This document shows, one piece after another, positions 53,301 through 56,300 of a stretch of DNA of 64,000 nt (position 1 is its first letter; each line of letters starts with the position of its first letter). The DNA is taken from the NCBI GenBank assembly GCA_002269645.1, contig NIVC01000180.1:124001-188000 (forward strand), read 5' to 3'. The notes beneath the pieces were generated by a model, which saw only the letters and a program-made list of their open reading frames with translations, searched no databases and had not been told where the DNA came from. The position numbers and the translations under genes are program-made. The stretch is from Macrostomum lignano (Eukaryota).

Positions 53301-56300
53301 CACGCTCAGACTTGTTTGCTGTTGCTTGCTTGCTTAAGGGACAATAAAGCTACTTTGACGATACTGCCTGTGCTGATGCTGCATCAGGGTGCTCACTGCA
53401 TCCTCCATCCGATAATTATCCAACCGAACAGCCAGCCTCAACTCGCTCCCCAACCGCCCTCAGCGGTTAAGAAGTCCGCTCCAATGTGGTGCCACTCGGT
53501 GAGCCCGGGCCGCGCGCCCCGCCTCACGCGGGACGAGTACTATCACGTGCCCTTCAACGAGCGCAAGCCCTGCCTGTACATGCGCTGCTGCTACGAGGAC
53601 CATCGACCCCGGCTGTTCGTGTCCAACATTCTGGAGAAGCTCTGCTGTCAGTTTGTAAGCACCGAGTAGTGAAACTCTCTTGGAAGAAGTGCCAGAATTT
53701 AGGACAGCTCGCGACGTCTTCTAAGCTAGGACTAACGCAGGGGAAGAGTGATCGCAAACTAGTCTGGGTGGGTCTCTAGATGTCCTAAATTTATCGCTAC
53801 AGCTACTTGTAGTAGTAAGCGAACACGCAGGCTAAAACAGTTTTTTTAAACCGCCAATTACCACGAGTGAAACTGCCGACTCGCCCCTCCCAGGAGCAGG
53901 ACATCGAAGACGTGCAGGAGCTGGTGAGTCGCGAACGTCGCGGCGTGCTCAGCCGGCTGCAGTCCGCACTGCAGTCCTTCGCTGAAGCGCTGGACACTGC
54001 GGCGGCCGACTTGCGCGCCTGCAAAGGTACCGGCGGCCGCACCCTGCTGGACATGCAGCGGCAGCGTCAGTTGCGGCTGATGCTGGAGAAGATGAAGGTG
54101 AAGCTAAAGGCGATGCGCTCCCAGCTGACAACGGACTCCGTGCCGGTGCGGCTGAAGGAGTGCCGCGCCCTCGCTCGGCTGCTGCGCGACTCCCTGCTTG
54201 ACCAGCAGCACTCCTTGCCCGATGTCTTCGTGTGGCTGCTCTGCGAGGGACAGCGGCTGGCCTTCTCCCGGGTGCCTGCCAGGTAACTATACTCTGGCAT
54301 GACTCCACCCTGACTCCACTCCACCCTGACTCCACTCCACCCTGACTCCACTCCACCCTGACTCCACTCCACCCTGACTCCACTCCACCCTGACTCCACT
54401 CCACCCTGACTCCACTCCACCCTGACTCCACTCCACCCTGACTCCACTCCACTCTGACTCCACTCCACCCTGACTCCACTTCACCCTGACTCCACTTCAC
54501 CCTGACTCCACTTTACCCTGACTCCACTCCACTCAAACTGACGCCGTTCCGCAGGCAAATTCTGCACTCGGCCACCTCTGAGGCTGAGCGCGGCAAGGAC
54601 TGCGGCCGCGTGGTGACGCTGTTCCTGCGCAAGCCCGGCCGGAAGGGCGCCGGACAGGCGGGCTGGTCCCTGCAGTGCCAGCTGAAGATGTACCTGTGGC
54701 TCGGCCTGCTCAAGGACATGCGCAACTACCGCGGCACCGTGCCCGAGGGCTACCAGGCGACCACCTTCAAGTACCGGCGACCGCCCAATGAGATAGTCTA
54801 CACCGAGCGGAGCCTGTTCGAGTTCCGGGCCTACCTGTTCATGGCGCGCAACCTAATCGGCTCCGACGAATCCGGCCTGTCCGACGCCTTCGCCAGGGTG
54901 ATCGTGAACGACCAGATCGCCACCACCCACGTGATCTCAGAGTCGCTCAGCCCCATGTGGGATCGAACCCTGGCCGTGAACCCCGTGATTTTCTACTTCA
55001 ACGAGCAGACGGTGAAGGACCAGCCGCCCGTGGTGGTGGTGGAGATTTTCGACGATGACGATGTGGTGAGTCTGGCCGGGGTCGGCCGCCATCCGCGGTT
55101 GAATTGTCTTCCATTTATGCTTACTTCCGTTGCGCTAGAGCCCGATTTAAAAATGCGATTTTAGTCATGTTTTTCTATCGTTTTGAGGTCCAGACAGCCA
55201 TTAGAGTGATTTATTTAATAGTCATGCTGGAGTGCTGCGAATTTGCTTAGAGAAAGACATCTCAAAGACATCAAAGACTGTTGTGCTGATTCTTGAAGAG
55301 AAATGGCAGAATTTTATTGCTACACCACCCACCTATTCACATTGCAGGCCATCAAGATGCCGTTTGTAAGTAGCAGTAGTTGGAGTGTTGGCTCTGGCTT
55401 GAGTTTACTTTGCGTCAAGTTCTTGGACATTGGTTGGTGACGATAGAAAAAAATTCATTTTCTAACCTCATTTCACTTTCTTTCTTGTTTTTTTTCAATT
55501 CATCAAGTATCAGAACGTCCTTGGCAACAAAGGCTCTGTAAGCGGCATGCGGTACTCAACCTGAGACAATATTTATAACCATAATTCGGTTATTACGTTC
55601 GTAACCTTCGAGTAAATTGCATTTAGTTTCTTTTTTGACACCTAATGATAATGATAAATTCTGTTTTGATATTTGTATTCTTCGTCTACTTTATGTTGTA
55701 AAGCCATCAATATAGAGAAGCTGTTGAGTTGTATTACCTGTTGCATGCTTTTTTGGATTTCACCCAGTTGAGCAGCACCAACATCTCTATTAAAGAATGT
55801 TGTAACCAGTGACCTCTCTGCTAAATGCTACTTGCTACTCTGTTTTGCCATCAGTTACCAGTTAGTATTGTTTCCTTTTAATTTAAGAGGCTTCTTACGC
55901 AGATCCATGCTTAAAATTGCTTACTGACGAGTAGTGATGAAAGAATTAGTCGCGTTAATTTCTTATAGTGAGTGCAAAAAGCCTTGAGTTGAGAACTTAG
56001 GGCTTATCGAAATTCCGAATTGCAATTTTCCTCGCGCACAGAAGCACTAAGATGCTGCTGCGCCATCACCCCGCAGGACAAGCCGGAGTTCCTCGGCCGC
56101 TGCTTCTGCAAGCCCATGGTGACGCTCGCCACCTCGGCACTGCGGGAGCCCTACAGGCCGCCGCGCCTCGACTGGTGGGAGATCTACCGGGGACAGTTGA
56201 ACGCTGGCGAGCTTCTGGCCGCCTTCGAGCTCATTCAGCTGGACCCGGCCACCGGTCAGACCCCGGCATTCGCGCCCAGCCTTGAGGACCTTCGGCGGGC

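Follow-up and report, generated by a model that had tools for sequence, protein, structure and literature searches.

Can a Ca2+-binding loop of a ferlin be rewritten by exons of only a few codons? This question is raised by a 64,000-nucleotide stretch of the Macrostomum lignano genome (assembly GCA_002269645.1, contig NIVC01000180.1, positions 124,001 to 188,000 of the forward strand; hereafter, the window), which contains an otoferlin-like gene with an intron placed inside Ca2+-binding loop 3 of the C2D domain. An earlier reading of the window from its letters alone (hereafter, the sequence-only reading) had proposed two tandem microexons within this intron, here denoted mx1 (peptide AIKMPF) and mx2 (peptide NVLGNKGS or YQNVLGNKGS). 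Comparison with the gene's own splice sites and codons, with a macrostomorph relative and with ferlins of other flatworms and other animals leads us to favor, with a probability of about 0.72, the view that mx1 is real, that mx2 is unproven, and that the loop-3 intron is a cassette site in flatworms.

An otoferlin-like gene with an ancient intron in C2D loop 3

The ferlin gene lies on the plus strand and extends, in multiple exons, from ~41.7 kb to past 63.8 kb of the window. A Pfam search with the spliced segment under study identified FerB (residues 1-50) and a C2 domain (residues 93-182), adjoining and with no DysF domain between them; the exons that code for the two domains are contiguous in the gene model, as in a type II ferlin. 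In a sequence search against the PDB, otoferlin scored 266 bits compared to 169 bits for dysferlin and 148 bits for myoferlin, and the homologues of the window protein carry the database name 'otoferlin'. Given that FerB directly precedes the C2 domain without an intervening DysF and that otoferlin is the best match among solved structures, the gene can therefore be classified as an otoferlin-like (type II, DysF-less) ferlin and the domain as C2D, in accord with the sequence-only reading. The exons and the intron that matter here, all on the plus strand, are as follows (in this list and below, a slash marks a splice junction).

54555..55065, plus strand: exon coding for the last part of FerB and the beginning of C2D, with the ligands of loop 1 (GSD...LSD) and the half of loop 3 that contains D-x-D; ends in phase 0
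55066..56076, plus strand: intron of 1011 nucleotides (nt), phase 0 according to the flanking translations, splitting the Ca2+-binding loop 3 of C2D
56077..56586, plus strand: exon that opens with the second half of loop 3 (DKPEF), continues through the remainder of C2D and reaches into the beginning of C2E

The upstream exon has the acceptor ccgcag/G at 54555 and the donor GTG/GTGAGT at 55066; its end at 55065 reads ...GACGATGACGATGTG/GTGAGT or, in the longer reading, ...GTGGAGATTTTCGACGATGACGATGTG/GTGAGT. The downstream exon starts at 56077 with ccccgcag/GACAAGCCGGAG, or ccccgcag/GACAAGCCGGAGTTCCTCGGC when read further. Because the translations of both exons run up to the junctions in frame (...EIFDDDDV before the intron and DKPEFLGR after it), the intron is in phase 0.

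In hair cells, otoferlin has been proposed to sense Ca2+ for vesicle fusion, and recent cryo-EM and mouse work published in 2025 defined the ligands of its C2D domain, whose two Ca2+ ions are coordinated in the mouse by D990 and D996 of loop 1 and by D1052, the carbonyl of Q1053, D1054 and D1060 of loop 3 (PMC12526402). Mutation of the C2D Ca2+ sites in the mouse lowers release probability and abolishes the Ca2+ cooperativity of hair-cell exocytosis (PMC12526402). The window protein (veifDdDdv/dkpEflgr) aligns without gaps to the otoferlin sequence (veiyDqDsmgkaDfmgr), so that the D-x-D at the end of strand beta6 and the acidic residue before strand beta7 coincide with defined Ca2+ ligands, which identifies top loop 3. 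The junction falls between the equivalents of mouse M1056 and G1057, two residues past the D1054 ligand and four before the equivalent of the D1060 ligand (a glutamate in the window protein), and the sequence-only reading was thus right in placing the intron within the loop. The loop-1 aspartates are invariant among the aligned ferlins, including the window protein.

The same intron position is found in other flatworms and in distant ferlins, which indicates that the position itself is ancient. A scan of JGI metagenomes yielded 67 ferlin loci with identities of at most 57%; these confirm only the old age of the intron position.

Two candidate cassettes within the intron

The elements that make up the two candidates are listed below.

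55310..55347, plus strand: 3' splice-site region of mx1: no AG over 38 nt, pyrimidine content of 68%, UGC at -30 and -5 (cattgcag)
55348-55365, plus strand: microexon mx1, 18 nt, AIKMPF, cacattgcag/GCCATCAAGATGCCGTTT/gtaagt
55462..55507, plus strand: 3' splice-site region of mx2: branch-point consensus CTAAC at 55462-55466, then a pyrimidine tract; no AG over 61 nt, up to the AAG at the end
55508-55537, plus strand: candidate microexon mx2, 30 nt when read from the AAG acceptor, (YQ)NVLGNKGS, tcatcaag/TATCAGAACGTCCTTGGCAACAAAGGCTCT/gtaagc
55514-55537, plus strand: short version of mx2, 24 nt, NVLGNKGS, from an internal CAG, with the same donor gtaagc

Both are shorter than the limit of ~51 nt that we set for microexons, have lengths divisible by three, are free of stop codons and are bounded by AG and GT. 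For mx1, this bears out the proposal of an in-frame cassette with a strong donor at 55348-55365: the sequence is as described, and the exon is in phase 0.

As a reference for splice-site strength, 21 donors and 20 acceptors of the ferlin gene were curated and position weight matrices were built from them. The donors of mx1 (GTAAGT) and mx2 (GTAAGC) both fit the GTRAGY pattern of the gene; of the 20 acceptors, 19 are CAG and none is AAG. Against this background, the mx1 acceptor scores 15.2 bits, the best value among 693 non-annotated intronic AGs in 8.6 kb and one that falls in the top quarter of the real acceptors. The two possible acceptors of mx2 differ greatly, with 5.8 bits (mid-range) for the internal CAG and -11.8 bits for the AAG. 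The AAG that had been the preferred start of mx2 is atypical for this gene. The pyrimidine fraction upstream of mx2 (0.82) exceeds that of all 20 real acceptors.

The gene shows a strong contrast in composition between exons (62% GC, with 85% GC at third codon positions) and introns (41% GC). The log-likelihood of mx1 codons under the exon versus the intron model is +6.7 bits, a value that few stop-free intronic windows reach (top 1.7%) and that is typical of real exon windows (41st percentile); five of its six third codon positions are G or C.

One public protein bears on the use of mx1. An exhaustive HMMER search retrieved UniProt A0A1I8F1Y4 (M. lignano, 783 amino acids), which is 97% identical to the upstream exon; for the majority of its exons, identity to the window is 98-100%, which marks the DNA as M. 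lignano or a very close relative. At the loop it reads ...NEQT-AIKMPF-DKPEFLG..., with mx1 in and mx2 out. Inclusion of mx1 is not needed to maintain the frame, because NEQT and DKPEF are already in phase when joined directly, and gene predictors would seldom add an 18-nt exon without transcript hints.

How often such cassettes would arise by chance was assessed by a scan for segments of 9-60 nt that follow an AG scoring at least 2.7 bits, have a length divisible by three, are open and end at GTRAGY. Across 18 curated introns of the gene this yielded three candidates, two of which are mx1 and mx2, and none on the antisense strand of the same introns; over the whole window there were 13 on the plus strand, 10 of them overlapping, in full or in part, known or likely coding sequence, and three on the minus strand. 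Of the dinucleotide-preserving shuffles of the loop-3 intron, 6.8% contained one cassette or more and 0.8% contained two or more. Because the sequence-only reading had scanned the entire window, these statistics are suggestive and not decisive, and the comparative evidence carries the case. The third intronic candidate is 12 nt long (LLVV, 53803-53814) and resides in the intron 53655-53893; separately, an internal GTGAGT at 53924, 30 nt into the exon 53894-54282, is a possible alternative donor.

It might be argued, then, that both cassettes are pseudo-exons, never spliced, that arose by chance in an intron richer in AT, and that AIKMPF entered the public model as an ab initio artefact of an error-prone assembly. 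In favor of this view, the model is visibly wrong in several places (it drops real coding segments, one of 18 residues among others, and contains frame-shifted stretches), about 7% of shuffled introns yield at least one cassette, and a reading that covered the whole window can be expected to return some chance finds. It is opposed by the exon-like codon usage of mx1 and by the dispensability of mx1 for the frame, which would have left the predictor little reason to add it, as well as by the comparative evidence below.

The start of the mx1-containing segment, the mx1 acceptor plus the beginning of the exon (GCAG/GCCATCAAG, 55344-55356), also occurs elsewhere in the gene: a constitutive exon at 46843 starts with GCAG/GCCATCAA, also given as GCAG/GCCATCAAC (AINKG, 46839-46851), with the same 12 nt. 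This identity is probably a coincidence.

Conservation in a macrostomorph relative

The same gene, reached through the exhaustive HMMER search, is present on a 24-kb contig of the European Nucleotide Archive (ERZ25070786; here, L001) from a relative with 67% amino acid identity over the upstream exon. The orthologous intron of L001 is 3293 nt long (..VFDEDNV/gtaaga ... ggacag/GKSEFLGRCF) and cannot be aligned to the window intron, with the exception of one piece. This piece, window positions 55343-55359 (TGCAGGCCATCAAGATG), matches L001 12600-12616 (TGCAGGCCAGCATGATG) at 15 of 17 positions and consists of the mx1 acceptor together with the first 12 nt of the exon (GCAG/GCCAnCAnGATG). At the match, L001 likewise opens an in-frame cassette, gcgactctctgcag/GCCAGCATGATGGGAAATCAAACA/gtaaga, of 24 nt (12605-12628; ASMMGNQT) with the acceptor ctctctgcag. 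The match is unique at a threshold of at least 14 of 17 over both strands of the 20.3-kb L001 locus (40.6 kb), and local alignment around it gives z=4.8 (P=0.0025), with flanking control segments at background. Conservation of exon sequence within an otherwise divergent intron is hence seen for mx1 and not for mx2.

That the only significantly conserved piece of the L001 intron is the acceptor and 5' half of mx1, and that it again begins an in-frame cassette, is difficult to reconcile with chance pseudo-exons; together with the inserts found at the same site of other flatworm proteins (see below), it makes such an origin quite unlikely in our judgment. Considering the acceptor, the codon usage, the public model and L001 jointly, mx1 is very probably a genuine spliced exon.

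The end of mx2 (GGCAACAAA, GNK) has a similar counterpart in the 3' half of the L001 exon (GGAAATCAA, GNQ); the segment is too short to carry weight. As the start of ASMM-GNQT resembles that of mx1 (AIKM) and its end that of mx2 (GNK), the L001 exon and the two M. lignano cassettes might share a history of splitting, fusion or partial loss, although the second half of the resemblance (GNQ/GNK) is without statistical support. A colinear chain of short matches between the mx2 region and L001 (ATTCATTTTCT ... TTGCCAAAAAA ... CGGCATGC) was also considered and rejected, being no better than in shuffled controls (P=0.125).

The same site in other ferlins

Inserts at the corresponding position are not confined to Macrostomorpha. 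In Schistocephalus solidus, the transcriptome-derived proteins A0A0X3NX87 and A0A0X3NUA3 read EFFDIDGS-EDKSKQGYVKS-SGLNYLGRCFC, and A0A0X3Q4T3, otherwise identical to these inserted forms, reads EFFDIDGS-SGLNYLGRCFC. For S. solidus there is thus evidence at the transcript level of an alternative 11-residue insert at the exact loop-3 site. In Dicrocoelium dendriticum, the annotated coding sequence includes a 12-nt microexon, ttactgattacag/ACTGGGACACTG/gtaggt (TGTL; acceptor ttacag), within an intron of 12.2 kb: the upstream exon ends ...DIDPG/gtgagt, the TGTL exon follows 10.5 kb on, and the next exon begins aaattgcag/AATGAGCTGGAATTT (NELEF). In the AlphaFold model of this protein, TGTL (residues 474-477) is located in the loop that separates strand 461-470 from strand 480-493; the predicted local distance difference test (pLDDT) is ~89-90 for the C2D strands that flank loop 3 and 64 for the TGTL loop.

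The inserts of S. solidus, Dicrocoelium and L001 are alike in their identical position after D-x-D-x-x, in being in frame, in a length of 12-33 nt and in their association with the same phase-0 intron. They differ in sequence, the peptides (TGTL, EDKSKQGYVKS, ASMMGNQT and, in M. lignano, AIKMPF) being unrelated except that of L001, the only one homologous to mx1. These cassettes look like a flatworm feature with fast sequence turnover.

About 45 non-flatworm ferlins have the short canonical loop with no cassette-sized insert (one lungfish protein has two additional residues), and the six annotated otoferlin isoforms of a hemichordate do not vary at the site, all of them having the short loop. 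A word-indexed search of proteins, for which the query included both microexons, returned relatives of at most ~43% identity, none of them with an insert.

The proposal that splicing at the site varies is supported by the Schistocephalus transcripts and the Dicrocoelium microexon; in M. lignano itself, where A0A1I8F1Y4 includes mx1, alternative use is putative. Another possibility is that mx1 is real and constitutive, such that loop 3 would simply be longer in the Macrostomum lineage, with no regulated switch. Consistent with this, A0A1I8F1Y4, the sole M. lignano model, includes mx1, the mx1 acceptor matches the best constitutive acceptors in strength, and Dicrocoelium is represented by an including model only. 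Yet Schistocephalus expresses both forms, the flatworm-like sequence P0091 reads straight through the site with no insert, and regulation is typical of very short exons that have an extended AG-free zone and a UGC adjoining the AG (PMC8797185). We regard a purely constitutive mx1 as unlikely.

Several observations weigh against a real mx1 in a flatworm cassette site, or against its extension to mx2. A0A1I8F1Y4 is a poor gene model, and its inclusion of mx1 alone is no proof. In Schistocephalus, use of an alternative splice site, instead of a cassette, could account for the insert; the two genomic loci of Schistocephalus that we examined do not contain the C2D loop region. Models of Paragonimus and Trichobilharzia have the short loop with no insert, and in the Paragonimus kellicotti intron no homologue of the TGTL exon was found, only scattered 9- to 11-mers in the wrong order and with no AG. 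The inserted peptides are dissimilar across flatworm classes, so that outside Macrostomorpha the cassettes have no proven homology. With regard to mx2, the codon log-likelihood is only +2.2 to +2.4 bits, which is in the top 11-12% of stop-free intron windows and ranks with the lowest 3-5% of real exon windows; mx2 is missing from A0A1I8F1Y4; and the stretch of L001 that can be threaded onto it has neither AG nor GT, with an insignificant alignment (P=0.125).

These last points have to be set against the possibility that both cassettes are real and independently regulated, which would give four to six variants of loop 3 (skipped, mx1, mx2 of 24 or 30 nt, and both). The 3' splice-site architecture of mx2 is the strongest of the gene, with CTAAC and a 61-nt AG-free zone of 82% pyrimidine that resembles eMIC-dependent exons (PMC8797185); the frame is open up to a GTAAGC donor; two cassettes within one 1-kb intron are rare in shuffles, as noted above; and the GNQ of L001 recalls the GNK of mx2. 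The codon score, the absence from the public model, the L001 counterpart and the first AG of mx2, which is of a type used by none of the 20 curated acceptors, argue in the opposite direction. Two independently regulated cassettes are thus a tentative proposal, to which we give clearly less than even odds, and even if mx1 is taken as real, the chance that mx2 is real as well appears to be slightly below one-half. Of the original description of mx2, the sequence, open frame, CTAAC, tract and donor hold; codon usage is marginal, annotation is lacking and conservation is not detectable. On these grounds mx2 is best viewed as a well-formed and plausible second exon that is unproven. In its claims on mx2, on combinations of the two cassettes and on function, the sequence-only reading went further than the evidence.

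What the inserts might do

With mx1 as a real exon and the loop-3 intron as a cassette site, the following scenario can be proposed. An ancient phase-0 intron in C2D loop 3 would have become, in flatworms, the birthplace of small in-frame cassette exons. The skipping form retains all five acidic ligands and should be a normal Ca2+-binding C2D. Inclusion would add six residues (mx1), 8-10 residues (mx2) or 14-16 residues (both) to loop 3, between the D-x-D ligands (mouse D1052/D1054) and the last acidic ligand (the glutamate that corresponds to mouse D1060). Because the ligands sit at the base of the loop, next to beta6 and beta7, the insert should bulge from the membrane-facing tip of C2D, where it would contribute I, M, P, F and K in the case of mx1 or Y, V, L and K in the case of mx2.

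In otoferlin, the hydrophobic top loop of C2D inserts into the bilayer and that of C2C forms a submerged amphiphilic helix (PMC12526402). Since hydrophobic residues of the C2D top loop enter the membrane, inclusion of mx1 would be expected to deepen or stabilize membrane insertion, to shift its Ca2+ dependence and possibly to perturb Ca2+ site 2. In C2 domains, membrane insertion is driven by hydrophobic residues at the tips of the Ca2+-binding loops. The membrane-inserting top loops of C2C and C2D share with the putative inserts their hydrophobic character, given that AIKMPF and YQNVL would add residues of the kind found at the tips of these loops. The difference is that the otoferlin loops are fixed in the genome, whereas here the extra residues would be added or omitted by splicing.

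A class of otoferlin-positive neurons exists in planarians, and flatworm otoferlin is present in tegument and vesicle proteomes, which makes cell-type-specific otoferlin isoforms in flatworms conceivable. A more far-reaching version, in which flatworms across the phylum rewrite C2D loop 3 by fast-evolving microexons in this one ancient intron, is less likely than not; a single gene would then equip different cell types, such as otoferlin-positive neurons as opposed to tegument or secretory cells, with Ca2+ sensors that differ in membrane insertion and in Ca2+ response.

Other features of the window

The linker between C2D and C2E of the ferlin is encoded in part by short lysine-rich exons (KKKKK...) at 59662-59731 and 60159-60210 that have strong splice sites and may represent a variable region. 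A ferlin intron also contains, at 61146-61216 on the plus strand, a tRNA-like Rfam match (32.5 bits) for which ARAGORN makes no call; it is probably a tRNA-derived short interspersed nuclear element, and the translations of open reading frames point to a related element at ~34.7-35.1 kb on the minus strand.

Upstream of the ferlin gene, the segments 24384-28846 and 28263-32714 are tandem copies, 98.3% identical and repeating at an interval of ~3.88 kb, composed mostly of long (TGTC)n/(AGAC)n arrays and the 3' part of a DnaQ/TREX-like exonuclease gene; the duplication may be real or an assembly artefact. Open reading frames that start with MLDLETTGL... are found at 18529-18966 and 23920-24390. 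On the minus strand, 4397-6073 contains Gag-like open reading frames with a CCHC zinc knuckle, probably the remnant of a retroelement. Exons resembling an NSUN2-type RNA cytosine-5 methyltransferase, recognized from translations of open reading frames alone, extend over 36140-39234 on the plus strand and are interrupted by minisatellites with 21-22-nt units. In general, the introns and intergenic DNA of the window are rich in tetranucleotide arrays of up to 2.8 kb and minisatellites of 15-33 nt (48 Tandem Repeats Finder rows).

Relation to known systems and implications

Two bodies of work provide precedents for small alternative exons. The neuronal microexons of bilaterians (SRRM3/4, eMIC-dependent) are, like the candidates here, very short frame-preserving cassettes that alter surface loops of folded domains. 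eMIC-type microexons are characterized by a strong branch point and a UCUC-rich pyrimidine tract, by a long stretch free of AG and by a UGC near the 3' splice site (PMC8797185). Similar features at the loop-3 intron include the long AG-free zones, the UGC next to the AG of mx1 (cattgcag) and of the L001 cassette (ctctctgcag), and the CUAAC and long pyrimidine tract of mx2. UGCAG is not distinctive in this gene, however, for three of the 20 constitutive acceptors also end in it.

The second precedent is the set of vertebrate ferlin alternative exons (dysferlin 1a, 5a, 17 and 40a, short in-frame exons of otoferlin, and myoferlin 17), which are likewise small, in frame and function-modulating. 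To our knowledge, they are located in linkers between domains or take the place of the first exon of C2A, and none of them interrupts the Ca2+-ligand loop of C2D. Alternative exon 40a of dysferlin is the calpain-cleavage exon, as cited in PMC12264198. Our literature search found no paper on a microexon in a ferlin Ca2+-binding loop or on an otoferlin microexon at this site, even as pieces of the same-site evidence already sit unremarked in public protein records. For annotation, the implication is that cassettes of 12-33 nt at the loop-3 site are easily missed.

If true, the reading proposed here would extend the remodelling of functional surfaces by microexons to a Ca2+-coordination site, as a change programmed by splicing within the Ca2+-ligand loop of a C2 domain, and would offer a natural experiment, recurring across flatworm classes, on how the length and hydrophobicity of loop 3 tune a ferlin C2 domain. 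For the biology of flatworms, it would provide a handle on otoferlin isoforms in neurons as opposed to the tegument and vesicle-secreting tissues.

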